Shown piece by piece: positions 11,501 to 59,436 of a stretch of 64,000 nt of DNA (position 1 is the first letter of the stretch; the number at the start of each line of letters is the position of its first letter). The DNA comes from Lepidodermella squamata (taxonomy: Eukaryota; Animalia; Gastrotricha). Both the position numbers and the translations under genes were made by a program. Location of the stretch: positions 744,001-808,000 of the forward strand of contig JBLDXI010000001.1 in the NCBI GenBank assembly GCA_047495785.1, read 5' to 3'. A model generated the notes under the pieces. It saw nothing but the letters and a program-made list of their open reading frames with translations. It was not told the DNA's origin and searched no databases.

Positions 11501-11520
11501 CATGCTTGTGCTGTTTTTTC
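11501..11520 (+). repeat. Left target-site duplication of the LINE
   Basis: Identical to 15812-15831. Confidence 0.92.
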
Positions 11521-12244
11521 TGAGGAGCTGAGGAGAGAAGACCAAATAACGCTCAGCCAGGGCGTTGACATGCTCGACGGTTCTGAACCGGGCCGGCGTT
11601 CCTACTCCGACGTGACTCGACTTGCTAGCGAGTTGGAATGTATGAAGCGAGATATTAACGCGACGATGGTCGAAAACATGAAGGCGAAGGCTAATTTCGA
11701 AAAAGACAGCCACAAGGGTTCGTATGTTCTGACAGGCATCCCTGAAGCAAAAGGCGAGACAGGCGACCAACTGCTGAACTGCATCTTGAACGCTGTGAAA
11801 TCGCTACACCAGCCAGATGTTGGATCCGCCATCAGACAGGGAAGACCGTCCCCAGCTGCCCGGCCGATTCTATTCCAGCTGACGGAAGAGGGCCACGACA
11901 AGATGAAACGGAAGCTTAAAGACGTACAAGCCCAGCTCCCAGCTGGGGCTCGCATCAGACCCTGGCTCTCCTTTGATCTACATCGACGAGAACAAGAGCT
12001 CAAAATCCGAGGACGAACGATGAAATCCGCCGGGCTGGTAGACTACTTCCAGATTCGAGGTGGCTTGCTGAGAGGCATCAAGAACGTCGAGACTGTTAGT
12101 CGGATCGAGGCTCATTACGAGGGAGCATTCTTGAAAGTCAACGAGGTGACAGCGTCTGACTGGGAAAAGTTCGACAAAAGGTTCCCCGAAGTATCACCCC
12201 TTCGTGTTCGTGCTCCGACTCAAGCGGCAGGCGGGCAGCATTAG
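11521..12244 (+). CDS. LINE ORF1 (C-terminal part; 5' end probably lost at insertion)
   Basis: An open frame runs from the element boundary. It has a coiled-coil-like stretch followed by VLTGIPE...R.GR....RPILFQL, typical of LINE ORF1 RRM-like regions. Confidence 0.75.
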
Positions 12245-15200
12245 GTTTTGTTGAGCCATTTGTTAAGATTATGCTATATCAACATTAATGGATACTTCGA
12301 AAGAAAGCACGACCTAGTATTAGAGCTCACTGATCGCTGCGACATAGTCGCCATTGCTGAACTCTGGAAAGACAAGTCCTGGACGCCTACAAAAATAATT
12401 GGATTCTCATGTATCTTTATACCCGGCCAGAAACTCACTCTGAACGGCCGATGCTCTGGCGGTTTTGCCATATACCACCGCGAGAATAGTTTTTTCAAGT
12501 TGGATCTTCTAGAAGCCGATCAATATGTGGTCATACTCAAGCTACAGGTACCTTGCGAAGAAGCTGTAATACTAACTTTCGCCTACGCCCCACCCACATC
12601 AATCCATCATGCGAACCCGGAAAGGCTGGAATCAATCTCTCAGGCAATTTCGCGTGCCTGCGACCATGTCCCAGCAAACGGTGGCACAGTCGTAATGGGC
12701 GACCTTAACTCTAGAATTGGAGCGGAGCCAGACCTACCGGACGATTTAGCCGAGGAACTTGATATCCCACTGAGAAACACTATGGATAACGCCCCATCTG
12801 ACAGCGCTGACAGGCTCGTGTACTTTTTAAACTCCAATGACCTGATTTTGATGAACGGTAGATTCAAACCTGATGTCACTGGCGCCTTCACTCATTTCTC
12901 CGCACTTGGATCCTCCATGATCGACTACGGCGCTGTATCGCCGGCAATAATAAAGCGCGTTGACTCGTTCGAAGTTCGCCCCCGCTCTAACCACTCTGAT
13001 CACTGCCCCGTCATAGCTAGTCTAAAATTCAGAAGAACGTCGTATAACTCTACGCGTTTAACTTTAAACAAGCAGCGCTTCGATAATCTAATCAAGCAAA
13101 GACTACCGTTGCTAGCCCATGAATCGCAAGCTGCCGACCCGGACTGGATGGCAAAGGAACTCAACAAGATCGCCGAAGCCAGCGCAAAACCTGCGCGATC
13201 AAGAGCAGCTATGGTGAAGAACATTCGTCGCATCCGATACTACCCTGGCCCACCAGTTGACATGCCTGGAAATTCGCGTCTCACTCTAACAAGAGAGGAA
13301 AGGGAAGTCCTTGAAGCTTTGAAAAGAAATCATAACAATATATGGAAATTGCGCAGGAAAGATCCCGAACCTGAGGACATTCCAGATCTGGCGATCTTCA
13401 AAGAACACTACGCGAATCTAATGTCCCGCGGGTATACCGCCCCCGATCCGGCTCCCCAGCCACCAAGCAGTGACCCAAAAATCTTCGGCGACGGTTGGCC
13501 TGATTCATCAGTGAAAGCTCTCCTCCAACAACGGAAACGCGGCTACTCATCTTCACTCGACCCACCTGCAACTCTGGTCCGGCTGACATCTTCGTGGAAC
13601 TGGCACTGCCAATCCCGCCCGTTGCTTTTCAGCAGTGCGGACGTGACTGACTATGAAAAATGGCGCAAGCTCAGTGATGAACCACCGCTCAAACGGGTCA
13701 CTGGCAGAAACCAGCACGATGAACTGCTGAGACCTATTAGCGTAGAAGAAATCACCGCCTGCATCGCCGACTGTGATCTAACTTCATCGGCCGGACTCGA
13801 TGGCATTACCTACGATGACCTGAGAAGAGAAGAAACCACAATCGCGCCATTCCTAGCTGACATGTTCACAAAAATACTGGAAACAGGGAAGTACCCCAAA
13901 GGTTGGAAATCAGTTGTAATCATTCCTATCTTCAAAAAAGGTGACGCCAAGGATCCGAAAAACTACCGACCCATAGCATTGCAATCCTGTACGGCTAAGT
14001 TGTTCTCGAAGATTCTCGACTCAAGGCTGAGAAAGTGGCTTCAACAACGCAGTCCTCTCCGACGCGAGCAATTCGGTTTCCAACCCGGCACATCTGCCAT
14101 TGACGCAATTGCAGTGTTCCATGCCGCCATCGCTTACTGGACTGAACGCAACCCTGAGCTCCGCCGCAAAGTCATAGCCACGTTTGTCGACTTCAGCTCA
14201 GCGTTTGACACGGTCGACCACAAAATATTGCTGGCAAAACTCACAAAACGAGGTATTCCTAATGAGTTTATCAGAGTAATCGAAGATATGTACGAAGGCT
14301 GCTCAGCGGTTGTGTCGTCACAAGGTATTCTCTCGGAGCCGTTCCGCACCGACAGGGGAGTCAAGCAGGGCGACCCGCTCTCACCTCTTCTATTTTGCGT
14401 ATACATAGACGAGCTACTCGACAACCTGGACCGCCTGAGTGGAACGCAAGGCCTCCCAGTAGGCTGCCACACGATTCGTGCACTGCTATACGCCGACGAT
14501 GTCGTGTTTCTGGCACTATCTATAGCCGATATGAAGCGCTACCTGGCAGAACTCGAGCGGTTTTCTCTTGATAATCGTCTCACGGTTAATGTCGACAAGA
14601 CAAAGTGGATGTTGTTTTACAAGGGCGATGCCGATCCCTCCTCTAGCGGCATAACGTTTCGTCTGAATAACCTCGACATCGAAAGAGTCTCCAGCTTCAA
14701 ATATCTTGGCGTATGGCTCGACGAACAGCTGCTCTACAAAAAAGCTATCGCTGAGGCCAACCTGAAATTGCAACGCGCGGCCGGCACCATACCGCAGTTA
14801 TTCAAGTTCTTCAACCACCTGCCTCCGTGGGCAGTTCGCGAACTTTACAACAGCTGCGTCCTATCGCAATTTGGATATGGTGCCGAGATCTGGGGCTTAT
14901 TCTACCCAGCGTCCTCGCCCCCGACGCATATGCGTTTCGCAAAGAGAGCCCTGGGCTTGCACACGGCTACATCTCACCGTATGCTGCATAAAGAGTTCCC
15001 GCTTACACACCCGGAAGACCACCGAACGGCGGCTGCAATCAAATTTCTCTATCGTATGAAGAACGCCAGTTCTCTCAGTCTGCTACACCAATCGCTCCTC
15101 AACTTCGATTGGATGGGGCGGAAAGCTCCTCGTAATCTGGCTGAAAGGGCCGAGAAAGCAGCTACCGATCTGAATTTAGGGAACATTTCCAACTTGCCTC

Positions 15201-15652
15201 AAGCACAGAGGAACGAACTATTGAAAACATCACTGGAAAAGAAGCGTTTAGACGAAACGAGAGACGGACTCGTAACCAAGTACGGTCAACACCCCGTGCT
15301 GGCCGACGTCAACAATGCAAACTTTGCAGAAATCTATTTTGAGATGCTTCCTCGCGAACTTGCCACCACTTTGTTGAAAATCCGCTGCAATTCCTTGTCG
15401 TCACCGCGCCAATACTTGGGCAATTGCCATCGCTGCGCTACTACGCCGACTGACGGCAGCAGTTGGAACTACATCCGCCACCTTATCACCGACTGTCCGA
15501 ACCCATCACCTGCAATCGCCAGCCTACGCCCTTCGCTCCCAACAATTTACGACGTCTACTTCGGCAACCTATTTAGCTCAAAATTAACCATCGACCGAAC
15601 TAGTGAACTCAACAAATGGCTCAACGTATTTAGGAAAATTGTAAACAAATAG
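12245..15652 (+). CDS. LINE ORF2: apurinic endonuclease + reverse transcriptase + C-terminal CCHC motif
   Basis: APE motifs NING, AELW, GDLN, SMIDY and SDH. RT motifs YRPIAL, QFGF, DFSSAFD, GVKQGDPLSPLLF, YADD and FKYLG. C-terminal CHRC-x14-H-x4-C. No stops or frameshifts over about 1135 codons. Confidence 0.95.
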   Translation, partial: VLLSHLLRLCYININGYFERKHDLVLELTDRCDIVAIAELWKDKSWTPTKIIGFSCIFIPGQKLTLNGRCSGGFAIYHRENSFFKLDLLEADQYVVILKLQVPCEEAVILTFAYAPPTSIHHANPERLESISQAISRACDHVPANGGTVVMGDLNSRIGAEPDLPDDLAEELDIPLRNTMDNAPSDSADRLVYFLNSNDLILMNGRFKPDVTGAFTHFSALGSSMIDYGAVSPAIIKRVDSFEVRPRSNHSDHCPVIASLKFRRTSYNSTRLTLNKQRFDNLIKQRLPLLAHESQAADPDWMAKELNKIAEASAKPARSRAAMVKNIRRIRYYPGPPVDMPGNSRLTLTREEREVLEALKRNHNNIWKLRRKDPEPEDIPDLAIFKEHYANLMSRGYTAPDPAPQPPSSDPKIFGDGWPDSSVKALLQQRKRGYSSSLDPPATLVRLTSSWNWHCQSRPLLFSSADVTDYEKWRKLSDEPPLKRVTGRNQHDELLRPISVEEITACIADCDLTSSAGLDGITYDDLRREETTIAPFLADMFTKILETGKYPKGWKSVVIIPIFKKGDAKDPKNYRPIALQSCTAKLFSKILDSRLRKWLQQRSPLRREQFGFQPGTSAIDAIAVFHAAIAYWTERNPELRRKVIATFVDFSSAFDTVDHKILLAKLTKRGIPNEFIRVIEDMYEGCSAVVSSQGILSEPFRTDRGVKQGDPLSPLLFCVYIDELLDNLDRLSGTQGLPVGCHTIRALLYADDVVFLALSIADMKRYLAELERFSLDNRLTVNVDKTKWMLFYKGDADPSSSGITFRLNNLDIERVSSFKYLGVWLDEQLLYKKAIAEANLKLQRAAGTIPQLFKFFNHLPPWAVRELYNSCVLSQFGYGAEIWGLFYPASSPPTHMRFAKRALGLHTATSHRMLHKEFPLTHPEDHRTAAAIKFLYRMKNASSLSLLHQSLLNFDWMGRKAPRNLAERAEKAATDLNLGNISNLPQAQRNELLKTSLEKKRLDETRDGLVTKYGQHPVLADVNNANFAEIYFEMLPRELATTLLKIRCNSLSSPRQYLGNCHRCATTPTDGSSWNYIRHLITDCPNPSPAIASLRPSLPTIYDVYFGNLFSSKLTIDRTSELNKWLNVFRKIVNK

Positions 15653-16792: not shown

Positions 16793-18740
<1,948 letters not shown>

Positions 18741-19257: not shown

Positions 19258-20659
19258 ATGAATTTTCGGCAAATCAGCCAATCAATTATTTGCTTCAGCG
19301 CTTTTACGAGCCTGTAAGTTATTGCACTGGCGCTTATACATAAGATTTGTACGAAAAACTTGGGATTTTAGAGCAGGTGCTTGCATGTTTGGTGCTAATG
19401 ACAACCAACCTTTACCGATGTTATCATTTTTCGACATGTTCGAAACAAAATCTGCACCTAATGCAGTTTGCTTTCCTTCTATCGGATGCTTCTCCGGATC
19501 TTTCCCATTCGACGATCTTCCCCCTCCCGAGGATCCAAAGCAGAAAATGTAGGATCTTGCGACATTGGACCCTTGCATTAACTAAATATCAATATATAGC
19601 CCTCCAAAGTTTTTTCGTCTACATCTAAATGATTCACGGACTGGCATTTCTATCTACCCGATCAAAAACTCGCTAGCAGTTAACACCACGAATTTGGTGG
19701 TTTTGACCCATGGCTTTACTGGCAGTTATTCCACCACGAAAGACTGGGTTGATCTCATTGCAACTGCTCTGCTAAAAAATGACGTAAGATTGCGAGTGAA
19801 AATCAAGGTGAAACATTATATTCCTTTTCTTTAGCCGTCGATTTTCTTACTCTTTATCGAATGGGAGAAAGGCGCTGCGATGCGCTTGAACCCAGTGACT
19901 AATCTGTACTCGCAAGCGGCTAGCAATACGCGAACAACAGCCGCAGCCGCGGTAAATTTCTTACAGTCCAATCCCAAATTCAGCATGGGACGGTCACATT
20001 GTATTGGCTTTAGTCTAGGTAATATTTAACGCAATAATTGATCAATACTGGTTATTAATTTTGGCAATTTTAGGCGCTCATGTTTGCGGATTCATGTCGA
20101 AATATTCAAAGCAAAAATGGAACCGTTTGTCAGCCATTGACCCGGCAGCTCCTCTTTTCAACAAGCCCTACAACCCTGAGGCCCGCGTTGATAAAAGCGA
20201 TGGAAATTTTGTCGACGTGTTGCACACCTCGAAAATGGTGAGTATCTCACGAAGTTTTACCAAATCTCTGGTTTTAATTTATATCATTTAAAGGGCATAA
20301 ACTTTGATATCGGGCATGCCGATTTTTATGTTAACAACATGGGGCTGCAACCTGGCTGTGAAAAGGAATTTATGCCACCAGGTACACCTTCTTGGCTAGT
20401 TGGCGAGCTATCTGCTTACTTCGCTTGCGGGCACTATCGTGGACCTAAATTATTTGCGGCTACGATAAATTTGGCAATGCCAAGAGAATGCGAAACTACA
20501 TTCAACTTCTGCCCTTGTTCCAATGACGGCGATATCACCCCACAAGTGAATGGATGTGATCGAAGCCAGTCTCAATTGCTTGGATATTATTCAATCAAAC
20601 ACGCGAATAGGACCGGGGCTTTTTGTGGCGTGACCACAGCCGAACCGCCATATTGCTGA
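19258..20659 (+). CDS. Secreted pancreatic-lipase-family lipase/PLA1 #1 (no PLAT domain)
   Basis: Signal-like N-terminus, [32 protein letters not shown] (split by intron 20019-20073), IDPAAP, VDVLHTS and QPGC...CGH. Ends in PPYC-stop. Confidence 0.88.
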
Positions 20660-26868: not shown

Positions 26869-30987
<4,119 letters not shown>

Positions 30988-31394: not shown

Positions 31395-32660
31395 TCATTT
31401 TGGTGACAAGCAAAATGGCGGTGTAGAGGTTGTAAATCCGTAATAAGCGCCAGGTTTAGCAGCCAAGAACGACCAATAGCCCATAGGAGGCGCCTGGGCG
31501 CATTTCGGTTTGCAATTTCCTTTAACGAAATCTTCCAGCGATACACAAGGGCAAAAGTTGTTAAAGGCGCATTTGCGGTCTAGATCTGGCTTGTGAATAA
31601 TCGACTCAGCGAATAAAAGCGGCGCCCTGTGATGGGAACACGCCAGTGCGTCTTCAATGTTCTCGAAAGGATTGAACCCAGAGGTTATTTCAACAGGTTT
31701 CCCAACTTCGCGACGTCTTAAACGACGCCGCTTCGACAGTATGATACAGCCAGGTTGCCACTTGGCATTATTCGCGTAAAAATCGACAGTTCCAATAGGC
31801 CGCTCGAGCCCGAGTCGGGATGTATGTAGAGTGTCTACATATAAGGCATCGCTTCGGTCCAAACGCGCCGTTGGGTCATTTTTATTGAAATGAAGATCGG
31901 CTGGGTCGAGGCCAGTCACCCGAGCGATTTTTGTGGCGTTGTATCGCTTACCGAAAAAGCCGCAAACGTGGGAACCAAGAGAAAATCCGATACAGTGAAT
32001 TTTAGTCGGGTCCAACTTCGGATTCGACTGGACAAAATCAGCCAAACAGTCTCCTACAACGCGAGTGTTGCTGGCGGGCTGTAAATTTTTCAGGTATAAT
32101 TCAATCTTCAATCTCGAAGAATTATTAGTAAAACAACCTGTGCGTATGGATTGACATTGTAGTGGAACGCGGCTCCCTTGGCCCATTCGACGTAAAGAAT
32201 GTGAATATTCGGCTGCAATTTATCAAATAATTTAGGGGTTGAACAACAGGGGATTCTAATGAATTTTTACCTTCATGGTGAAAAGAGCATTGACGATCGG
32301 TTCGTGCCAGCTTTTCGTGTTTTCAAACGTGTCCAGCCAACCGTGAACAAGGATAACCAAGTCACCCTGATCATTGCTCAGATCACCGCTGCTTGTAATC
32401 ACACGAGATGAGCTTTTATTCGCCGATTGATCGAAAGTGAACAAATGATAAGTTGGCCCAATTACAAGCGGATTCTCCGGGAGCGGCAAATCATCGAACG
32501 GCGGCGCTGTCGAATAGCAATGCGACGTTGCTGGAGTAATCAAAGACTGGTAGCAAACATCTTTCGGACTCGCCGCAGCTAAATTCTGCTGGCTTTCGTC
32601 AGCCCGTGCGAGTTGTAAAAATTCACAATAAAATGCGCAAAAAATTGCTAGTAACTTCAT
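31395..32660 (-). CDS. Secreted pancreatic-lipase-family lipase #2
   Basis: Signal peptide, [27 protein letters not shown] and QPGC...CSH. Ends in PPFC. Confidence 0.88.
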
Positions 32661-33220
32661 AGTTCCTATTTAAAATGAGAAAGCATGTGGAAAAGTTTGA
32701 AAAATATTATATGAATGAAGGCGCGTGGCGACTGTGTATTACGCTGGTGCGGTCAACTGACTCAGCTCTTCATCAACATTTTGATCACGACCGCATGTTA
32801 TCATGTGATTCCTTATCTTACTAGGTATACCGCATAGCCAAGCAAATACCTAATATATGCGGTATTTTAACAGTAAACATCGGCCTCCGTGTATTGTTTG
32901 GCATAGATAACGTAACAAAATAATATACACGAGCGGGCTGCAACTGAAAAATAAACTGTCGATCTCAACACTTGGATGCTTTCGTGATTGAACTGAAAAA
33001 CTTGTACCGAAAATTCCCGCGCAAACCGAGCCTACACACACATGCGTGCCGCAAAAAATGGGGTTTAAAGTTTCTGTTGCGTAACACTAGGCACAATAAT
33101 AAACGTTGGGACAATCGACTCTCATAAAATTTTAGAAATCTATTTCGGCTAAGATAAGCTCCTTTTTCAAAATACACAATTCATCGGTAAATCTTGGTAT
33201 ATTTTTTATTGTAAATTGTA

Positions 33221-34421
33221 TCATATGCAATATGGAGATGTTCCTTTGAGATCGCCGTAAAATGTCCCAGTCTTATGTCTCTCTTCATGTGACCAATAAC
33301 CAATTTGCTGCTTCTCGCCTGAGGAGCAACTGGAACATTTTAGCCGCAAGAAGTCTGTAACAGACGGGCAGGGGCAGAAGTTGGCGAAAGAGCAACCGGG
33401 CCGGCTTTTCGCTAGAATCGTTTCGGCATAGATCAAAGGCGCTCGGAGGTGCGAGCATGCGAATAATTCCTCAATTCCTAGCGTAAACTGTTCTACAAAT
33501 CCGATTAAGGCATTATGCCGCCGATGCCGCTTGCTTCCGTGCCCACATCCGGGCTGATAGACGCCGTTAGACACATAGAAGTCAACATGCCCCACCGGCC
33601 GCTCTAATCCTAGCCGCGACGTGTGGATAACGTCGACGAACATCGCGTCGGTCTTGTCGAGTCGCGCTGCGGCGATCGGCGAGTCGAAGTACGGATAAGC
33701 GGGATCGAGGGCACTGATGCGGGCCCAGCCGCCCTCCATAGCCGCTTCCTCGCGAAATCGCTTGCCGAGAAAGCCGCAAACATGAGCGCCGACACTGAAG
33801 CCGATGCAGTGGCTTTTAGTTGCGTCGAATTGGTCGTTTTCCAGTAGAAAACTCCCGACAGCCCATGCGATACTACGCGTATTCGCTGAAATTTGCGCGT
33901 ATGGATCTGAGCTGAAATGAATCGCTGAGCCTTTCGACCATTCAACGAATAGAACATCTATCTCAGGCTGTGAAATTTCAAAATCAGAAATGTTATAGAA
34001 TTATCGCAAACTCCACCTTAATCGTAAGAATATTTCGGATGATTGGTGTTTGCCAGACTTCTGAATTCGGAAAATCTCCCATCCATCCGTGGACGACTAC
34101 AACTAGACCGCTTTCAGCCAAGTTTCGAAGTTCGCGGCTACTTGATATTATTCGCCGTGCATATCCGCCCATTGCCGATGACAAGCTTCGATACAAGTGA
34201 TAGCTAGGAGCGATTTCGGTGAAGGGATCTTGCGGCAGAGGCATCGACTCGAACGGCTGCTTGTCATTTGAAAAGCACTTGCGCAACTTTTCGGTTCCAT
34301 AACAAATGGACGCAGCGTCGGCACTATGTATCAATTCAATTCAGAGAGAAATGAAAGAGAGTAATTATAATATAAACCTCAAACAGAAAGAAAAGAGCGC
34401 CCAGAGGTGATAATGGAACAT
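33221..34421 (-). CDS. Secreted pancreatic-lipase-family lipase #3
   Basis: Signal exon MFHYHLWALFSFCL, VHGWMG, HCIGFSVGAH, LDPA, VDVIHTS and QPGC...CSH. Confidence 0.87.
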
Positions 34422-34577
34422 CTCGTTATATAGTTTTACAAACAAATTTTGAGTTGAACAAAAAACGGCAAAGGTTAAAGTAAACAGCGCTATTTACTTG
34501 TCATATTTTTGCGAGATACCATAAACAAAGGAAGCCTTGAAGATAATCACAGCACTACGATGTGGCTTGTCAAAAAT

Positions 34578-36045
34578 TCATTTATGTGCCGGTGATGAAG
34601 TGAATGTCAAAAGCGAGGCCGATTTGCAAAACGGGCTTGCTGCATTGGTTTCGCCGAAAAAGATGCCTGTTTTCGCTGGGAAATCTTGCACCGACCAATA
34701 TCCGAATGTTACACTGTCGCAATTCATAGAACACATTCTCGACTGCCATTCCGGGATTGAATTGCATCGGCAATATGCTGAGTGACAAGGAAATAAAATG
34801 CTCTCCGCAAATAGCTCCGTCACGCGGTAATGGCTGCAAAATGCCACTTTTCCAGTCACACTGCCAATTGAATCGACTAGTTGCGAAAATATATTTCGTG
34901 GACGGCGGCTTCCCCGTGCAAGCCAATGGACACAACCCGGCTGACTTTTTGCCGGAGGGTTAGGGTAGAAGTCGATGTGACCGACCGGTCTTTCCAAACC
35001 CTGAAAGGGCAATTTTCAGACAAATTATGACATTTTATTCAATGTTATACAGCTTTCGAAGTATGGATTACGTCCACGAAATCTGCATCTTGGCTTGAAA
35101 CTCGAGCGTCGTGGTCGTCTCTGTCGAAAGTTAAGCCAGCGGGATCTAAAGCCGTTATTCTACCCCAGCGAATTCGCTGCTCTCGCCACATTCTCTTGCC
35201 AGCGAACCCGCAAATATGGGCTCCCATACTGAAACCTAATTAAGACGTAAGTAGATGAAAAAATAAGATAAGATTTGAAGAGTGAAACCGATGCAGTGGA
35301 TCCTAGAAAAGTTGAAGTTGCTGCTTCGCTTTCTGTCGTTCCACATCATCGGCGACTGAAGGAAGAAATCTGCTAATTTGTCGCCAATCACGCGAGTATT
35401 TGCCGCTGCTTGGGCCCAAGGTTGTCGCCCCAATTGTGCCGCGGCACCTTTCGCCCATTCCACGAAGATTATAAGCATGTGAGGCTTCAAACAAATTTAA
35501 TAAAAATAGAATACTTTTTCCAAATTTACCTTTATTCTTAGCAAATTTCTGACGATGGGATCTCGCCACATGGCAGTGTTCCGCCAATTTCCAGTCCAAC
35601 CGTGGATTAGAATAGTAATGTCTCTTTCATCCTTTCGTGTCCCGCCGGAACCAGTTTTGCCAGAATGATCTATTATGAGGCCGGCGTCAGGTATCGGCAA
35701 GCGGACGCTTTGAACCTGAGTTTAAGAACAAGGGCGATCGCTGGAAGAATAAAAAATGGAAGAGAAAGAGAACCTCACCAGACGATTGATTAATCACAAT
35801 AACGTGAAAAGATGGATTGATCACATCCGAATGCTCGGGCAGTGGCATGCCATTGTACGGCTCTTTGTCCGAGTAACAAATTGGACCAATCAAAGCACCG
35901 AGAGTATTTCTACGAGGATAGCATAGCTCCTTCGCGAAACTGCTATGCAAAACTTCTCGTTGACTTGTGGGAAATTTCGACAATGCGCTTACCAAATGGA
36001 AAGAAGCGGGCTGATCAACACACATATTCTCGCTTTGATCGACAT
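34578..36045 (-). CDS. Secreted pancreatic-lipase-family lipase #4 (recent duplicate of #5)
   Basis: MSIKARICVLISPLLSI, IHGWTG, HCIG|FSMGAH (extra intron 35236-35288), LDPA and QPGC...CSH. Confidence 0.86.
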
Positions 36046-36960
36046 AAATGTTCGCTGTTATTTCAAGCAGTTATAATAACTACTATTGTAGTCGGTCATT
36101 TTACTCGAGATGTTCTTTGTTAATGTAACTCTTACGCGCTGCGTCAAATAATCATCATTGTTGAATTGACATTTGTCTTCTTTTTATTTATTTCGCATAA
36201 TTTCAAGATTTTATTTGTACAACATTCCGCCTCGCGGCGCACATTAGGTGAGATAAAGTATGCCACGGTGACTGAGTAAAAGTAGTAAATTCGCAGGCAT
36301 TTCTTTTTAGAAAATTCGGAGGGCATTGAGGACTTGATACACAAAATATTAAAATGACTGTGTGGGCAGTTAATTGGTGTCAACAGCCAAAAGCTATCCA
36401 GTTTCTGGAATAAATTTCGAGTTTATATGCGAGCTTGGGTTGTTTTTCGATTTCGGTTGTCAAGTCAGTAGCTAGTGTCATAGCCGATATATTATTATGG
36501 TCAAGGTTATTGGCGATTCGAGTTATCTTGCGAAGTAGCGCTCAACGAATGTCTTGATGATTTCGTCCCGCTTATGAGGTGGTGACTCGGACAAAAGCGA
36601 TGACGTCAACAGCGGGGTGGGTTTCTTGGGGAAGGGCCCTCAGGCAGCATGCTACAAGGCAAGCAGACCCGGACAGGCACATCACAGAGCAGGATCGGGT
36701 CCAAAAGAGAATTGATGGAGTTTATCTGATTGGGTGAGCTGTTTCCGACAGGGAATAAGCCAGTAGCCTAACTTGGCGGCTCTTAACCTGCCTGTAGAGC
36801 TCTATGGCAATGCTGATGTTAATCTAGGATAACTGGCATCGATGAAGTTAGAAAGTTCAGCATCTGGTTAAGGTAAACCGCGCTATTTACTTCACAATTC
36901 ACAAATTTTTGCGAGACACAATAAACAAAAGAAAGCCTTGAAGATAATCACAGTTTTTAT

Positions 36961-38377
36961 TCATTGATGTGCCGGAGAAGTGAATGTCAAAAGTGAGAGC
37001 GGCCTGCAGAACGGACTTGCTGCTTTTGTTTCTCCGAAAAAGATGCCCGTTTTCGCAGGGAAGTCTAGTGCAGACCAATATCCGAATGTTACCGTGTCGC
37101 AATTATTAATACAAGCTTCCGACTGCCAGTCCGACATTGAATTGCATCGGCAATATGAAGAGCGACAGGGAAGTAAAATGCTCTCCGAAAATAGCTCCGT
37201 CGCTCGATAATGGCTGCAAAATCCCACTTTTTCGATCACGGTGGTTATTGATTCGTATATTTGCGAAAAAATATTTCGACGACGGCGCTTCCCCCTAGCT
37301 AGCCATGAGATGCAACCCGGCTGACTTTTTCCTGGAGGATTAGGGTAGAAGTCGATGTGGCCGAGTGGTCTCCCAATACCCTGAAAGAGACATTTTTTTT
37401 AAACTATGAAATTTCACTTCCAACGTTACAGCTTTCGAAGTATGGATTACGTCCACAAAATCTGCATCTTGGATTGAAACGCGTGCGTCATCATCGTCCG
37501 TGTCGAAAGTTACGGCAGTGGGATCTAGAGCCGTTATTCTGCCCCACCGAATTCGCTGCTCTCGCCACATTCTCTTGCCAGCGAACCCGCAAACATGAGC
37601 GCCCATACTGAACCCTATGCAGTGAATCCTGGAAAAATTGAAGTTGCTGCCTCGTTTTCTGTCGTTCCACATCATCGGCGACTGAAGGAAGAAATCTGCT
37701 AATTTATCGCCAATCACGCGAGAATTTGCCGCTGCTTGGGCCCAAGGTTTTCGCACAAGGTGTAACGCAGCACCTTTCTCCCATTCCACGAACATTAACA
37801 GCATGTCAGGCTTCAAAGCAATTTTAAAATAAAAATATACATTGAAATATGTTTTCAATTACCTTTATTCTATGCAACTTTTTGACGATGGGATCTCGCC
37901 ACATGGCAGTGCTCTCCCAATTTCCAGTCCAACCGTGGATTAGGATAGTAATGTCTCTCTCATCTTTTCGGGTCCCGCCGGAACCAGCCTGGCTGAAAGG
38001 ATTTATGATGAAGCCAGCATCAGGGATCGGCAAGCGGACACTTTGAACCTGATTTAAAAAAAGAGAGAGGTTGAAGAATAAGAAACGGAAGGGGAAGAAA
38101 ACCTGCCCAGAGGATTGATTGATCACAATAACGTGAAAAGTAGGGTTGATCACATCGGGATGCTCCGGCAGTGGCATGCCATTGAACGGTTCTTTGTCAG
38201 AATAACAAATTGGGCCAATCAATCCGCCGAGAGTATTTCGGCGAGGATAGCAAATTTCCTTTGTAAAACTAGGCAAAAATCCTTCATAATGTTGGCAAAT
38301 TTTGTGGCACAACGCGTTTACCCAACGGAAAGTAAAGCACTGATCAACATAGTACATATCTTCGCTTTGATTGACAT
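36961..38377 (-). CDS. Secreted pancreatic-lipase-family lipase #5 (recent duplicate of #4)
   Basis: MSIKAKICTMLISALLSV, IHGWTG, HCIGFSMGAH, LDPT and QPGC...CSH. Nucleotide similarity to #4 extends into introns and the 3' flank. Confidence 0.86.
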
Positions 38378-38745
38378 AATTTCCACTGTTATTTCGAGCA
38401 GTTAATAATTACTACTAGACGGTTTCAACAGCCTTTCAGTATTTTCCAGCTCTGATGTGTCAAATGGGTGTGTAATTACGTAATATAAACGGCGCCGGAC
38501 ATGAGTGCGAAAAACTAACCCCTTCTTTTACAAAGCCAAAAAATAATCGCAGTGAAAAACCTACAAAAATCAGCCAATTTGAAACCCATAAATTATGTAT
38601 CTAGGTCATTTTATGTTTATGTTCATGTAACTCTTACGCGCTCTGACAAACCATCTACATCATTGTTGATTTCCCATTTTTCTTCGCAATATTTTTATTT
38701 CGTTGATAGTTGCATACATATTGGTTCAAGCTATTTTCGGTTTTG

Positions 38746-39836
38746 TCATGAAGAGATGGTATTTAGGGAGCAGTATGGCGCCTTGTCGGGTGTGCTGCCG
38801 TAGAATTCACCGCTGGCTGGTGATTTGAATGACCAGTAACCAGCTTGAGCGCTCTGCGATTCAAGGCAGCTCTTGCATTTGCCCGCTTGCACGGCTTTCC
38901 ACGATTCGCATTGGCAGAAGGTGTGTAGGCACCCGTCTGGCGGGTTTATTGAAGCAGTGAACAACTGAGGTGATCTCGAGTGATCACACGCTACGTTCCA
39001 GCAGCCAGGCTGCTGCTTCACGTCATTGACCCAGAAATCCTTATGACCGATTGCAAAGTAAAGACCTAATACAAAGAGGATTGGGTAAATCATACCTGAG
39101 ACTCATTTAAATAGGACTTACCGATGGTAGAGGTGTGTATTACGTCTACGTATTCGGCGTCTCCCTTATCGACGCGAGCATCCGCTCGGTCTGGGTTGTG
39201 AAAAGCCGGGGATGCTGGGTCCAAAGCAGTGATACGGCCAAATCGTTGCTCCATCCTCTTACCAGCAAATCCGCAAACATGAGCTCCCAGCGAAAATCCG
39301 ATGCAGTGGTAATTTGAGTGATCTGATTTCTCATCTTCGTTGAAAAATACGCCGAGAGCAGCTCCGATGGTTCGCGTATTCGACGCGGCCTGGCTGTACA
39401 GGGTCCAACCTGCCCCGGGGGAGGCACCTTTCGCCCAATCGACGACTATTACATCAGAGTTCGGCTTTACTTTGAAAAGCTCGCTGAACATAGGTTCAAG
39501 CCAGGAACTAAACGATCCGTTATAAGATTCGCTGAATCCATGAATTAGCAGATAAACATCGTCTCTTAATTCCTTACTGTTTGAGGGCCAATGTGAAATA
39601 TTGTTTCAAGGCTTGGTCAACTAGACTCACCCATCGTTGATGAGGCGGACTGGTTCGTTGAGCCGGTGCAGGTAATATTTGGCAGGTATTTTATTGTAAG
39701 GATCTTGTGGGACGGGTAAATGGCGGAAGGGTGCGTTTTCGTTGTCGAAACACCCCACTTTGTCGTAGCAAACTTTTTTCGCAGCTACGCCGCTTATCGC
39801 AAGGCCAAATAAAGAAATGAAGGGGAGGAATTTCAT
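38746..39836 (-). CDS. Secreted pancreatic-lipase-family lipase #6 (mini-lid)
   Basis: [49 protein letters not shown] and QPGCWNVACDH. Confidence 0.9.
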
Positions 39837-40288
39837 TGTTTAGGAACTAGCCCGATACTACCTTATGATGATAGAGTGGGGTAGCATATATAATGTGACT
39901 GCGGCGCTGGAATGAGGTCATAGTTATCTCTGCAGTTCATCCCGACGCAACGATATGATAACTGCAAGTGCGACGGTGGGGTAAAGGAAAATTCGCGACA
40001 CTTTTTTCAATGTAACATCACCCTTAAAAAACGGGGCATTTTTCCCACGTTCTTCGAGCGATATGGATGTAATCTTATCACAATATAGCAAATGGACGAA
40101 TGGCCGTTGCTTATCAAAACGACATCCGCATGAGCCCCAATATTTGGCACGAACTTTAAGTTTCTTACTCAACTCGAATTCTTGGTTGATAATTCTATAA
40201 TATGCATTTATTGGACAAGATTTCGGCTAAGCTCTTCAAAGTCATATGAAGAAATCATAGCTTTCCTTTGTGAAAATTCGAATCCTTA

Positions 40289-41398
40289 TTATTGCAAGCA
40301 ATACGGCGGCTGGCTGGTGGTTTTTCCGTAGAACTCCCCACGAGCCGATGACAGGATAGATCTATAGCCCAGCTCAGCGCTTAGGTGCGCGTCGCAGGTG
40401 AGGCATTGGCCTTTGTCGAGCAATGACCACGTCTCACATGGGCAGTAGAGGAAACTGCAACCAGGCGCAGGGTTGATAGATTCAGTGTAGAAATGAGTTG
40501 CCCGAACGTGACTGCAAGATGTGACAGCGCTGACTAAATCGCCGAAACCAGAAATATTATCATAACAGCCGGGTTGCTGCTTGATATTATTCATCCAGAA
40601 ATCGCTATCTCCGACCGGGAAATAGATGCCTGATAAATAAAATCGTTTTTAAAATGAATAGACAACAAAATATTGGAACCTACCCAATTTGGAAGTGTGG
40701 ATAACATCGACGAAATCAGCATCGCCAACAGCAACGCGGGCTTCCAGATTTTTCAGGGTGCTGAAACCGGGCGCAGCTGGATCCAAGGCAGAAATGCGGC
40801 CGAATTTATTGGTCATTGTTTTACCAGCAAAGCCGCAAACATGCGAACCAAGAGAAAATCCGATGCAATGATAAGTCGAGTGATCTTCTTTGCCGTCCTC
40901 GTTGAAGAAAACGCCAAGAGCTGCGCCGATGGTGCGCGTGTTCGAAGCAGCTTGGTTGTAGACGGAAAGGCCTTGAATGGCCTCGGCGCCCTTCTCCCAG
41001 CTAAGGACGATGACATCGGCGCGAGGCTTGACCTGCCACAATCGCTCAATCATATCCTTTTGCCAAGCTGGGTACGAAACGTTGTACGACTCTGTGAAGC
41101 CATGAACAAGCACGAAAACATCCTTGGCCAAAGATTTTCTGTTACACGGACATATTATTTACAAAATATTTGAATATTTCGCTACAATTTACCCATCGGT
41201 GATCGTGACAAGAGGTTGTCCGTTTCGGTGCAAATAGTAAGTCGGTGGAATCTGCTTGTACGGATCTTTAGGTAGCGGCAGGTGGTTGAAGGGAGAGCTG
41301 TTGTTGAAACAGCCAACTTTTTCGTAGCAGACCTTGCCAGCATGGGCAGTACCAGCCGCAAGAAGCAAAACGGCAGAAATTAGACCAATTGAACTCAT
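40289..41398 (-). CDS. Secreted pancreatic-lipase-family lipase #7
   Basis: Signal peptide, [28 protein letters not shown] and QPGC...CSH. Confidence 0.9.
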
Positions 41399-41472
41399 GA
41401 TGGTTTGAAGGTTTCAGTAAGATTCAGGTAAGATTCAGGTTAGACTATATTCTTGGCCAAAATTTACCCGGC

Positions 41473-41480
41473 TTTTATAG
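41473..41480 (-). promoter_or_regulatory. Candidate TATA box of lipase #7
   Basis: TATAAAAG on the minus strand, about 75 bp upstream of the ATG at 41398. Confidence 0.45.
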
Positions 41481-42121
41481 CCGCAACCGAGGCAAATGTC
41501 CCCGGTAAACGAGGCCGTCGGTCAATTTTTTTAGACATTTTATCTGCCCTGCACCGGTAAATTGTTATTTTCGTACATATGCGAAATAGCAGCTGTATAA
41601 GTTGGAAAAAATGGATATCGCACCAATGTACAACCTTATCGCTATATTCCCACGGTTGAATCACGCGTTATGTCCATTTTCTCAGGCTGAAATATTTCGT
41701 CCTTCTCTCAGACATAAATCCGCCCATTACTCAATTGATTGTTAACTTTCGAGAATTTGAGCAAAAAATTAACGCCTATAAGCCAATTCGATGTCTTTAG
41801 TCCGAGCCATAGTGAAAAGAACAAAGAATTTGAAGTTTAAAGGCTATAACACTGAGATAAGGTAAATTAGTTGAAAAGATGCAGCAAGGAAACAATTGGT
41901 AAATAGTCTAATCGATCAATCATTTAATCGATCAAGTTTATTTTCGCGACTGATTGTTAATTTTCGAATTTGCAAATCACACTTGCTCAGGTTATTTATT
42001 ATTGACTTTTATTATGATTTTCAACTCGCATTCGTAAAATACTTCATATAAAAATTTCACCGAAAAATTGAAACCGGATTAATTTTAGCACCTTGTTTAT
42101 AAGTTCTTTGATTCTGTTTTT

Positions 42122-43373
42122 TTACGCGCAGAAAGGCGCCTTGTCGCTGGTGTGACCCCAGAAAGAGCCGCGACCCGGATAGTTGATAGACGGGTAGCCA
42201 GCATGCGAGCCATTAGCCTCGTCGCATTTGTCGCATTTGCCATCTTCGAAGGCCTTCTTGTTATCACAAGAGCAGAAGAAAAAGCTGCAGCCCTTCGGAT
42301 TGACGATCGAGTTTGCGTAAAGTTGAGGCGCGCGTTCGTGCGAGCAGCCGAAAAAGGCCGCAACCCAATCTTCAAGAGAGCTGACAATGCCATAAGAGCT
42401 AGCAGGTGAAGATGGGACTGAAGAAAAAAATCAGTTAACATTTATCAATGGAATGTTTAGAAATAACTCACAGCCATTAACGTAAGCGGCATGAGTGCCA
42501 GGCTCAGGTAGGGGAATGTTGCTTGAGCGGGCCGAGCGGCGTTTGCGGGAGAAGCAACCCGGTTGTTTCACAGCACCGTTGGCGAAGAAATCAACGTGAC
42601 CAATCGGGAACTGCAGGCCACACCAGCTAGTGTGGATGACGTCGACAAACTGCGCATCAGTCTTGTCAACACGGGCAGTTGCGTTGTCCTTGTCAAAGTT
42701 CGGCCCAGCCGGGTCGATAGCCGAGAGACGGCCCCAACCGCCACGAGCGAACTTGCCAGCGAAGCCGCAAACGTGAGCACCGAGCGAGAACCCAATGCAA
42801 TGAGCCTTGGTCGAGTCAAACGCTGGATTCTCCTGCAAGAATTTGATGACCAAACGGCCAATGACTCTGGTGTTACTGGCTGGCTGCGAGTAGATTTTCA
42901 AACCCGAGCCGTAGTCAGCACCCTTGCCCCATTCTACGAACATGACGTCAGCACTTGGGCGAACTTGCAACAGGTTATCAATGATCGGCTGGTTCCAGGT
43001 CTAATAATACCGTCATCGGTAATATTGCTTTTTAATTAAAAAAATGAAGTATTATATACCGCAGTATTGGACAAATTGCCGCCAAAGCCATGGGTCAAAA
43101 TGATTAAATCAGCGACATTGACTTGATTCGCGCTCTGAAGAACTTGTTTAGGCTGGCCTGCGCGGAACAGGTGGAAAGTGGGTTCGATATCCTCTGGGTC
43201 CATTGGAAGAGGCATATCGCGGAAAGGATCGTTATTATCGAAGCATCCAATGCCATCATAGCACACACTTTTCGCCTCACTATTTTGATATTAAAATTGT
43301 GAAACGATAGAATGCGCCTCCTTAAAACTTACGCGGCGAGGAAAGCAGCTGCGAGACACAGCAAAATTTTCAT
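42122..43373 (-). CDS. Secreted pancreatic-lipase-family lipase #8 (longest lid)
   Basis: [14 protein letters not shown] signal exon, [25 protein letters not shown] and IDPA. The last exon (42122-42418, not in the ORF track in this frame) encodes [13 protein letters not shown]...KAPFCA-stop. Confidence 0.9.
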
Positions 43374-50391: not shown

Positions 50392-51731
50392 ATGTTGGCA
50401 AGAAGATGTTTAGCTTTGAATGCCGCTGTTCTTCTTACTCTCTTCGGTTCAACGTAAGTTTCTGGTGTGTAAATAATTTATGAATTAATCTGGGTTTCGT
50501 ATTTTTTTCAGAAACGGTGGCTTTTTAGAATGGTAAAATCCATGTTGAACTTAGTCACGTATTGATACTTTGTCTCCTCTTTAGGGTGACTAAAAGATTG
50601 AGCCAAGTGCTTCCAGCTACAAAGAGCGACCCGTTATCCAAAATTATGCCTACTGTTCACCTGTTTTCGCGCGACGCAGATGAATCCGACACCAAAAAGA
50701 AATACTGTCAGACAAAGATTGCTTTACCTTAAAATCATTTTTCATATGCGTCTTAATAGGTGGCCACTTCAAATATTATCCAGAATCGATGGCAATGGCC
50801 AGCACGACAGCCGAGTGGCGGCATGAGCAACTAGCCAGAAGCCTATTCGGCAATGGAAGCGAGGAACTTGGCCAAGGCGAGTTAATTGTGATGTCACATG
50901 GTTGGCATGGCAAATTATGCGGCGGTTTCGGCTCCGCATCATGGAGAGCACCTCTCGTCAACAATTTGCTCGACACCGTTGTAAGTGATATATGGCTTGA
51001 TTCTGGCAGTTTTACGCCTCTGTCTACTCTAGCCCAACGCCAAAATTTTGTTCATTGATTGGAAGGATGGTGCGAAGGGCTCTGTTTTTTCGCCGTACTC
51101 ACGGGCAGCATCGAACGCCCGTGTTGTAGGCGCCGCGACGGCTGATTTTGTCGTGAAACTCGCTGGTTTGGCCAAAGCCTCGTTCAACGCAACAAAGCAT
51201 ATCCACTGCATAGGATTCAGCCTCGGAGCTCATGTCTGCTCTTTCTTCTGCAAGCAAATGGCAAATCGCCACAAGCAAATTTGCGGTCATTTGACAGGAT
51301 TAGACGCGGCCGGTGCCCGATTTGAAAACACCCCGTCAACTGAACGACTAGACAAAGATGACGCACTGTTTGTCGACGTTTATCATTCTTCGGAGCTGGG
51401 TATCTCGCACCCTGTCGGGCATGTTGACTTCTACATAAACGACTACACTAAATCAGCCCAGCCCGGATGTGGGTTTACTTTAATGGGGAGTTTTTCAAGA
51501 TGCAGCCACACTTTAGCGGCTCAGTTTTACGCTCGGTCAATTTTGTACGAGAACAACCTGTGTTATCGCACGGACATATGCGCCTGTAATAATGGCGATG
51601 ATGATGATGAGGATGATGAATCCTTCAAAACGGAATGTTCAAAAGAATGTTTGTTAAAAGCCGGTTATTATATCAACTACAGGACCCCGGTGGGCCGTGT
51701 CGATTTATCGCGCGGGAAGCACTGCTGGTGA
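50392..51731 (+). CDS. Secreted pancreatic-lipase-family lipase #9 (divergent subfamily)
   Basis: Signal exon [47 protein letters not shown] and QPGC...CSH. Confidence 0.86.
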
Positions 51732-54330: not shown

Positions 54331-55654
54331 ATGCACTGCATCTCAGGCTCCTTCCTAATCGCTGTCCTCTTTTGTTCCGTCAATTATTCGTAAATAAATA
54401 ATGCAACTGATTTTTCTCTATAAATGTCTTTGTTTCTCGTGAACAGGATCGGACAGGTCATCAAACAATGGTATAGCCTTACAATGTCTTTCATTTTTTC
54501 ACTTCTGAGTTTCAATTACAAGATTTAGGTTGGTCAAAGGTATTCTCTCTGCTGTGAAGAAGCCACCAGCCGATTCCATGGCGTTCATCAAGCCGACCTT
54601 ATACTTGTTTACATCGAAATCAACCCACGAAAAATATTGTAATATTTGCTAGCAGCTCGTGGGGCCTAATGATTGAGTCTTTTCGCATAGGCACTTACTT
54701 CGATCATGTTCCAACGGCCCTCCAGTATCCCGGAACGCCACAAAGCAACCTCGAGTTCAGTAGACAGCTCTACGACAAGCCTGGCCGGTATTATATTGTA
54801 GCTCATGGCTGGTTGGGCATGTTTTGCGGGTCTGAAGCGAATATTTGGCGAGCTCCACTCATCAATAACTTGATGAAAGCTATTCAAGTAGGTCTAGTAG
54901 CTGATTTAATTCATTAAGTTGGCTTTCTTTTTTTCTAAAGCCAAATGACAAGGTGATATTTGTTGACTGGAGTAAGGGTGCAAGCAACAGGCTGTTATCG
55001 CCATATTTGAAAGCGGCAGCTAATACGAAATCAATTGGCATAGGTGTCGCTGACTACCTGGCATCTCTAGCCAAGAATTACCGAAACATCAAAATAAGTG
55101 GACAATTTATACACTGCATCGGATTCAGTCTCGGAGCTCACGTTTGCTCGTTCCTCTGCAAGCGAATGAAAGAGATCGGCGCTAAGCAACCTTGCTACCG
55201 TATTTCTGGTCTCGACCCAGCCGGACCGGGTTTCGAACGAGAACTATCACATGGCCGGCTAGATAAAACAGACGCTAACTTTGTTGACGTTTATCACTCA
55301 TCAGAGGTCGGCTTAACGTCTCAAATAGGCCACACAGATTTCTTCTTGAATGATGCTAGAATAGCACAACCTGGCTGCTCCAAGGGTGGTGAAACGGATT
55401 CTCTCAACGCGTGCAGTCACACAGTGGCAGTTCAGTTTTTCGTCAAGTCCATTGCTCAAGGACAGGTGACAAGGCGATCTTCAATCGTCAGCAAAAATAC
55501 GGCTTGCTTCATCGACAAATGCAAATGTAGGACGTACGGTGAAGACTCAGCCTGCCCTCAGAGATGCTTAGTAAAAGTTGGATTTTACGCGAATTCAAAC
55601 CACAGAGAGGGACGAGTTCAGATCAGACGATCAGAGGATTGCTTACATGAATGA
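54331..55654 (+). CDS. Secreted pancreatic-lipase-family lipase #10 (same subfamily as #9)
   Basis: Signal exon [44 protein letters not shown] and QPGC...CSH. Exon layout matches #9. Confidence 0.86.
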
Positions 55655-55780: not shown

Positions 55781-56933
55781 TCATTCAATGTTTGTTTCGT
55801 TGAGGCATGTTGTGCGCACGATCATCTCAGTGACAATGTAAGGGTCGCAGTTACTGGCCGGGCGACGGTCCTCCAGGTAGCCATAGCCATCGGCGGCGGT
55901 TTGGCGAGGAACGCGGATGGAGCAGCCGCGATTGGCGACGCCCCACGAGAATTTTCCGATGTGGGCGGTTTCGTGGTGGCCGGTCAGACGGCGCTCATTA
56001 CCCTTGCCGTAGTTCTTGATGTGAAGATTGTGGCGCGGTTCCAGTTTGGCAATAGCTTCTTCAATTGCTCTAAAGAAGTTGAACATCATTTAACATGTAC
56101 AAATACATGACAGAGACTTACTGCATTCCTTTCCCGGGCGTTCGCATAGCTTCCGTTGAGTAGTTCGTATGAGCTCCAGCTCCATTCCAGTCACCAGGAA
56201 TCGGCTTCGGGTCATACGTTATTACAACACCGTAATCTTCCGCAACTCGGTTCAGAAGGTAGCGTGCGACCCACAGCTGGTCGCCCATTTCAATACCCTC
56301 GCACGGGCCGACCTGGAACTCCCATTGAGCGGGCATGACCTCGGAGTTGGTGCCAGCGATCTTGATGCCAGCGTAGAGGCAGGCCTTGAAATGCGATTCC
56401 ATGATATCACGACCGAACGCCTTGCCAGCCCCTACCGAGCAATAGTAAGGGCCTTGAGGACCCGGATATCCATTCTTCGGCCAACCGAGCGGGTGCAAAT
56501 CAACGTCAAGCATCGTGTATTCCTGCTCGATACCAAACCATGGTATATCGCCTTTCGCTTTATCCATAGCTTCTTTACAGGTCTTGCGGTGATTCGTTTC
56601 AACAGGCTTATCCTGATAGTCATAGACATCGCACAGGACGATAATGTTGTCGCCTCGCAAGAATGGATCCGGATACATAGCTACAGGGTAGATGTAAACG
56701 TCAGAGTTCTGACCGCTCGCCTGTCCAGTTGACGAGCCATCAAAATTCCAGATTGGCAGTTCTTTCACATCGGTGGGCTTTTTATCCAACGCACGGGATT
56801 TGCCGCGGACGTTCTCGCCAGTGCCGTCGATCCAAATGTAGGTAGCGATTACGCGACCCCGCTGATCCAAATGCAAGTAGTTGTTAGTTATAGCTTTGTT
56901 CAAAATTTGAGACGGACCCCACATTCCTGACAT
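55781..56933 (-). CDS. GLUL: Glutamine synthetase type II, copy A (2 exons)
   Basis: [56 protein letters not shown] and GYLEDRRP. Confidence 0.95.
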
Positions 56934-58278: not shown

Positions 58279-59436
58279 TTAATCGGTGTTGGTTTCGTTA
58301 AGACAGGTCGTGCGAACGATCATCTCAGTGACAATGTAAGGGTCGCAGTTGCTGGCCGGGCGACGGTCCTCAAGATAGCCGTAGCCATCAGCGGCGGTTT
58401 GGCGAGGAACGCGGATGGAGCAGCCGCGGTTGGCAACGCCCCATGTGAATTTTCCGATGTGGGCGGTTTCGTGGTGGCCGGTCAGACGACGCTCGTTACC
58501 CTTGCCGTAGTTCTTAATGTGGATGGCGTGGCGCGGTTCCAACTTGGCGATAGCTTCTTCGATAGCCCTGAAAAATAATCATAGATTAAAATCTATTTAG
58601 ATAGGTTAGGGAGTGAAAACATACTTCATGCCGACACCAGGGGTACGCATGGCCTCAGTTGAGTAGTTGCTATGGCAACCAGCACCGTTCCAATCACCAG
58701 GGATGGGCTTAGGATCGTAGGTGATGACGACTCCGTAGTCCTCAGCAACGCGGTTCAGAAGGTAACGAGCAACCCACAGCTGGTCACCCATTTCAATACC
58801 CTCGCACGGGCCGACCTGGAACTCCCATTGAGCGGGCATGACCTCGGAGTTGGTGCCAGCGATCTTGATGCCAGCGTAGAGGCAGGCCTTGAAATGGGCC
58901 TCCATGATGTCACGGCCGAACGCCTTGGCAGCGCCAACCGCGCAGTAGTAGGGTCCCTGCGGGCCGGGGTAGCCGTTCTTCGGCCAGCCGAGGGGATGGA
59001 GATCGACGTCGAGCATGGTGTACTCCTGCTCAAGGCCGAACCACGGCTTCTCAGCCTTCGCCTTGTCCATGGCCTCTTTGCAGCTCTTGCGATAGTTGGT
59101 TGCGACAGGCTTGTCCTGATAGTCGTAGACGTCGCAAAGGACGATGATGTTGTCACCGCGGAGGAATGGATCCGGGTAAATGGCGACGGGATAGAGGTAG
59201 ACATCAGAGTTTTGGCCCGTAGCTTGACCAGTTGACGAGCCATCGAAGTTCCAGATTGGCAGTTCTTTCACATCGGTAGGCTTCTTATCCAACGCACGGG
59301 ATTTGCCGCGAACGTTCTCGCCACTGCCGTCGATCCAAATGTAGGTAGCGATAACACGGCCCCGCTGATCAAGGTCGAGGTAGGTATTGGTAATATTTTT
59401 GTTCAGAATTTGGTACGGTCCGAGCATAGCAGCCAT
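58279..59436 (-). CDS. GLUL: Glutamine synthetase type II, copy B (2 exons)
   Basis: Same motifs and intron position as copy A. A TATATAA lies on the minus strand at about 59531-59537. Confidence 0.95.

Follow-up and report, generated by a model that had tools for sequence, protein, structure and literature searches.

Arginine-rich, convertase-type motifs in the lid loops of a lipase array of Lepidodermella squamata: candidate sites for a two-chain lipase

Why should the lid of a lipase, the loop that closes over its active site, begin with a run of arginines, and may this run be the target of a protease? The question is raised by a 64,000-nt stretch of the genome of the gastrotrich Lepidodermella squamata (contig JBLDXI010000001.1, positions 744,001–808,000; hereafter the window), animal genome DNA with GT..AG introns of ca. 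50–60 nt, in which ten intron-containing genes of the pancreatic lipase family (PF00151; #1–#10) were located. Lid movement and interfacial activation are central to lipase enzymology and are usually seen as purely conformational. An earlier note on this DNA had proposed that the long lids of the array carry furin-type cleavage sites, the cleavage of which would give a protease-switched enzyme of two chains. In the present analysis a basic motif was found at a conserved position in the lids of several species, and nicking of this tract by a proprotein convertase, as judged from sequence and predicted structure, is given a probability of about one half.

The basic tract and its conservation

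Ten lid regions of the form QPGC...C-x-H were found by motif scan, and spliced gene models were built from tblastn guides and searches for GT..AG junctions. Scans and models gave lids of 22, 35, 29, 31, 31, 4, 16, 51, 10 and 11 amino acids (aa) for #1–#10, in exact agreement with the lengths given in the earlier note; its observation that an Arg-rich tract stands at the start of all five lids of at least 29 aa was confirmed by translation, and the five short lids of the window have no comparable basic tract. The tract-bearing genes are: #2, 31395–32660 (−), 382 aa in 3 exons with a signal-like N-terminus, lid 31641–31745 (35 aa), KRRRLRRR at 31710–31733; #3, 33221–34421 (−), 365 aa, lid 33458–33544 (29 aa), KRHRR at 33518–33532, followed by the lid helix; #4, 34578–36045 (−), 402 aa in 6 exons, lid 34839–34931 (31 aa), minimal motif RRPR at 34896–34907; #5, 36961–38377 (−), 402 aa, lid 37219–37311 (31 aa), KRRRR at 37276–37290; #8, 42122–43373 (−), 361 aa in 4 exons, lid 42347–42553 (51 aa, with an intron at 42418–42471), RKRRSAR at 42527–42547. 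The strict consensus R-X-K/R-R is present in four of the five long lids (#2, #3, #5 and #8), and #4 has the minimal R-X-X-R only. The tract begins 2–8 residues past the first lid cysteine, just before the canonical lid helix. The link between tract and long lid holds inside the window and fails as a general rule, the motif being carried by relatives in lids of 14, 16 and 17 aa.

From the frequencies of Arg and Lys, the strict motif is expected by chance at ca. 2.7e-4 per position, or ca. 1% per lid of 30–50 aa; outside the lids it was found in none of the 16 proteins tested from the clade described below. Over the opening 14 residues of the long lids Arg and Lys stand at 38:8, as against 158:144 elsewhere in the same proteins (Fisher p ca. 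1e-4, indicative only, the sequences being related). Both P1 and P4 are always Arg; P1′ is S, G, N, H or Q, and P2′ is mostly I, L, V or A. The Arg codons within the tracts are mixed, and an origin by codon-repeat slippage was ruled out on this ground; excision of a peptide between two convertase sites was ruled out as well, no second site being present in any lid.

Word-index searches for relatives gave 319 family members in total. In a maximum-likelihood tree computed with the lids masked, all ten window lipases and nine relatives from metagenome and Logan assemblies formed one clade (support 100/99), to which a scan of metagenomes added no further members. The relatives stem from at least three other genomes: an intron-poor animal genome supplies P0002, P0092, P0094, P0210, P0211 and P0212, a GC-rich genome supplies P0093, and another genome supplies P0003. 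The motif was found as RRRR in P0002 (lid of 29 aa), RSRR in P0003 (33 aa), RRRR in P0092 (60 aa), RKKR in P0093 (39 aa), RRRR in P0210 (14 aa) and RRKR in P0211 (17 aa); read together with the next residue, the sites in relatives are RRRR-Q, RKKR-S, RRRR-S, RRKR-G, RSRR-H and RRRR-H. It is distributed over four subclades, namely #8 with P0092; P0093 with P0210 and P0211; #3 with P0003 and P0002; and #2 with #4 and #5. The lids of the #8 and P0093 subclades (51, 60, 39, 14 and 17 aa) share only the initial motif and a terminal hydrophobic x-F-G. Alignment of homologues, which the earlier note had named as a check, gave a motif conserved in position across species between diverging flanks (lids of 14–60 aa); because lids of such different lengths share it, the motif is kept, independent of lid length, while the remaining lid turns over, and because related species keep it, it is probably functional.

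The motif-free type is stably inherited too, the motif being absent from #7 and from P0212, its closest relative. On a contig of the GC-rich relative (L004) the motif-bearing P0093 (1439–2581) has as its immediate upstream neighbour a motif-free lipase (909–1259, lid of 21 aa); since the two adjoin, tandem pairing of both lid types recurs, as read from this contig, in another species. Among 238 sampled lids the strict motif was found in nine, six of them in clade members; the other three, in an annelid (Owenia) protein, a wasp protein and one further protein, lie outside the clade, which suggests that the lid motif arose independently on occasion.

A candidate in-frame GT..AG intron of 69 nt was noticed in the 60-aa lid of P0092 (contig L003, ca. 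1380–1450); its splicing would leave a lid of 37 aa with the motif unaffected. An in-frame unspliced intron was also sought in P0093; none was found in its lid, and one was found elsewhere in the gene.

Transcripts and predicted structure

RNA contigs of the public runs X1, X3 and X4 were examined over 37000–42990, that is, over #5–#8. They show spliced joints, CT..AC on the plus strand and hence GT..AG on the coding strand; the introns are covered by the DNA run X2. Among the ten lids, that of #8 alone has an intron (given above); its exact splice joint is present in contigs of X3 and X4, and X1 gives coverage. The spliced frame yields the lid of 51 aa, with the basic tract in the retained upstream exon. 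Since the RNA contigs carry spliced joints, #6, #7 and #8 are transcribed and correctly spliced; RNA contigs of #7 and #8 are abundant. The possibility, raised in the earlier note, that the basic segments are spliced out was ruled out for #8, the RNA contigs of which retain the tract; for #2–#5 it is unlikely, because the lids sit within single exons flanked by conserved motifs.

AlphaFold models of two relatives, P0092 and P0002, stood in for the spliced window proteins. P0092 (56% identical to #8): mean pLDDT 87, core above 95, the 60-aa lid ca. 50; the basic tract is without secondary structure, and the sole helix of the lid lies at its C-terminal end. P0002 (55% identical to #3): mean pLDDT 87, the tract region 53–57 with a four-residue turn; a long helix from residue 206 through the catalytic His. 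The tract is predicted to be a low-confidence, flexible and non-helical stretch within an otherwise confident lipase fold. Foldseek search with the P0092 model gave 1HPL, 2PPL, 1W52 and 1LPA at E ca. 1e-27 and TM ca. 0.7; the matches include horse and human pancreatic lipases, PLRP1, PLRP2, LPL and hornet phospholipase A1 (PLA1, 4QNN), and the modelled fold is the α/β-hydrolase fold of solved lipases.

When the last exon of #5 was aligned by HMMER with horse pancreatic lipase (1HPL), RNIFSQIYE fell on KNVLSQIVD of the classical lid, and a 10-residue gap was opened for ISWLARGKRR directly after the first lid cysteine. The amphipathic segment, taken in the earlier note for a new membrane-binding helix, is by this alignment the ordinary lid helix, and the novelty lies in the 10-residue insertion that precedes it.

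Convertase cleavage of the lid and alternative explanations

The preferred explanation is that, late in the secretory pathway, a proprotein convertase of the furin/kexin type nicks the lid loop, which is predicted to be exposed. The putative secretion of the proteins, the predicted flexibility of the loop, the Arg residues at P4 and P1, the small or polar P1′ and mostly aliphatic P2′ residues and the positional conservation all fit a site of this kind. Of the two chains that the nick would give, the N-terminal one would carry Ser and Asp and the C-terminal one His; because the site lies between both lid cysteines, the lid disulfide would hold them together, and the earlier reasoning that the His-bearing chain would be disulfide-tethered is sound. 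Both cysteines are conserved (near-invariant alignment columns C237 and C298), the disulfide itself being predicted. The lid helix would gain a free N-terminal end, by which the gating of the active site should be altered, maturation or easier opening being the effect leaned towards. The cleavage, the protease responsible, a trimming of the basic residues and any gain or loss of activity are plausible steps that we infer. As a tentative extension, the lid may be regarded as an internal pro-segment: the pro-lipase would be a single chain with its lid latched, and a convertase nick at the base of the lid would convert it into an enzyme of two disulfide-linked chains whose lid has a free end; paralogues with and without the cleavable site would have been kept next to each other since before the species split. 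If true, a conserved protease site at the lid hinge would add covalent, irreversible control to a lipase, a zymogen-like step comparable to the proenzymes of proteases or of phospholipase A2 and different from the inactivating hinge cleavage of LPL and endothelial lipase (EL); it would also provide enzyme engineers with a natural design of a protease-switchable lipase.

The known convertase sites of EL (RNKR) and LPL (RAKR, residues 296–299) both lie where the catalytic domain is joined to the PLAT domain, and cutting there inactivates the enzyme (PMC9656567, PMC8319833, PMC10160976). The window lipases share with these two enzymes the family, the consensus, the (proposed) protease family and the (predicted) location of the site in a basic surface loop; whereas in EL and LPL domains are separated by the cut, the site of the window lipases is inside the lid loop of a chain without PLAT. 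No match to the PLAT domain was found in any of the ten lipases, the chains of which stop ca. 80–90 aa past the His; on this evidence they belong to the single-domain invertebrate or PLA1-like branch, still inside PF00151. They resemble vespid venom phospholipase A1 and the insect "neutral lipases" in the PF00151 match, the Ser-Asp-His triad, the cysteine-bounded lid before the His and the α/β-hydrolase fold, and hornet PLA1 (4QNN) is likewise without a C-terminal PLAT domain; unlike this single-domain type, some lids of the window clade reach 29–60 aa and carry the R-X-K/R-R insertion after the first lid cysteine. Horse PLRP2 was crystallised in a proteolysed form (PDB 1W52; Mancheno et al. 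2004, as cited in PMC8287333). Its lid is ordinary and without a conserved convertase motif, whereas lids of the clade have the motif. The nick in the horse enzyme is reported to lie in the lid and is made by pancreatic proteases. In a full-text literature search no account of a lid-borne convertase site was found for the pancreatic lipase family; by this search the lid position of the site is new, and the enzyme family and the regulatory protease class are already known.

Basic clusters in the lipase family can bind, those of LPL having a heparin-binding role, and the tract may act uncleaved, as a patch of basic residues at the lid base by which the enzyme is anchored or oriented on anionic surfaces (acidic phospholipids, glycosaminoglycans, cuticle, food particles) or its substrate preference is tuned. 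The conserved tract, predicted to be surface-exposed and flexible, would suit such an anchor, and the furin site RAKR of LPL sits itself in a basic region (PMC9656567, PMC8319833). The anchor is a possible but less likely explanation, since the bias to Arg is strong, with Arg always at P1 and P4 in place of a free mixture of Lys and Arg, since the tract is always a compact block of 4–8 residues at one position, and since convertases would in any case be expected to encounter an exposed RRRR-S/G loop on a secreted protein; anchoring and convertase cleavage are, moreover, compatible and not mutually exclusive. Extracellular nicking by trypsin-like digestive proteases, as in proteolysed horse PLRP2 and with or without functional consequence, would agree with the presence of 1W52 among the best fold matches and with window genes that look secreted and possibly digestive, two of them (#7 and #8) with abundant RNA; it is nevertheless unlikely, trypsin being satisfied by a single Arg or Lys, whereas the conserved pattern of Arg at P4 and P1 is convertase-specific. 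That the tract has no function and is a neutral insertion of low complexity in a loop that evolves fast is more improbable still: the lid does evolve faster (#4 vs #5, dN/dS 0.46 in the lid and 0.29 elsewhere), and the tract of one relative, P0001, is degenerate, but four deep subclades and no fewer than three other genomes have kept the motif despite the turnover of lid length and sequence, with mixed Arg codons and at the low chance expectation per lid given above.

Several points weigh against a convertase nick. The proposal is drawn from sequence and predicted structure, and the models predict relatives ca. 55% identical to the window genes in place of the window proteins; Arg-rich loops also bind heparin and anionic lipids well. 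The site of #4, RRPR, has Pro at P2 and is a weak one. P0001 is the closest relative of #2 and has the tract RPRH; because this tract has decayed, the constraint on the motif is not universal, and the relatives represent only ca. three other genomes. No RNA contigs of #5 were found in the runs mapped over 37000–42990, a range outside which #2–#4 lie.

The array and its surroundings

Genes #2–#8 are arranged head-to-tail on the minus strand (31395–43373), and #1, #9 and #10 are on the plus strand. Complete reading frames of 326–402 aa were obtained for #2–#8, the exons of which match the PF00151 HMM at E 1e-37 to 1e-10; the domain is present in all retrieved relatives. The catalytic motifs GFS[LMV]G (GxSxG), [LI]DP[AT] and C-S/D/G-H, the His following the second lid cysteine, were found in all ten genes. 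The N-termini of #2–#8 are hydrophobic and signal-peptide-like (best 10-aa Kyte–Doolittle mean 1.9–3.0, a measure of hydropathy); for #3–#5, short upstream exons supply the signal-like start that the initial models lacked. The genes without the basic motif are: #1, 19460–20659 (+), modelled from tblastn and splice models except for its N-terminus, lid 20360–20425 (22 aa); #6, 38746–39836 (−), 326 aa, transcribed and spliced, lid 38989–39000 (4 aa); #7, 40289–41398 (−), 333 aa, transcribed, lid 40517–40564 (16 aa); #9, 50900–51731 (+), core model only, lid 51471–51500 (10 aa); #10, 54801–55654 (+), core model only, lid 55379–55411 (11 aa).

In #4 the GFSMG motif is seemingly interrupted; that the gene is a pseudogene was ruled out, the frame being restored by a 53-nt GT..AG intron and dN/dS vs #5 being 0.30. 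With dS of 0.45 at this dN/dS, both #4 and #5 are, by this estimate, under purifying selection. The intron (35236–35288, −) splits the GFSMG codons, is flanked by a GGTTTC repeat and is missing from #5, which is 78% identical; at the same position P0093, of another species, has an in-frame read-through of 21 codons (L004, ca. 1900–1960). The comparison suggests that the intron is old and that #5 has lost it, and speaks against a recent gain.

A single-exon acetyltransferase gene of the MYST family (17061–18560, +) lies just upstream of #1. On a contig of a relative (L001, 44–3221) a MYST gene is followed by a lipase, of the #3 type; since the neighbour there is of that type, the MYST–lipase order is a local synteny with a different paralogue. 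The minus-strand block of lipases is adjoined upstream by a tolloid-like astacin protease gene (CUB, EGF, CUB; 27822–30987, +). Further from the array were found a LINE-type retrotransposon ORF of 1134 aa with AP-endonuclease and reverse-transcriptase domains (11468–15652, +), with an ORF of 258 aa just upstream of it; an uninterrupted phosphatidylserine synthase ORF of 488 aa (7364–8830, −; PF03034, E 1e-112); and two glutamine synthetase ORFs with N- and C-terminal domain matches (56118–56933 and 58606–59436, −), an apparent tandem duplicate.

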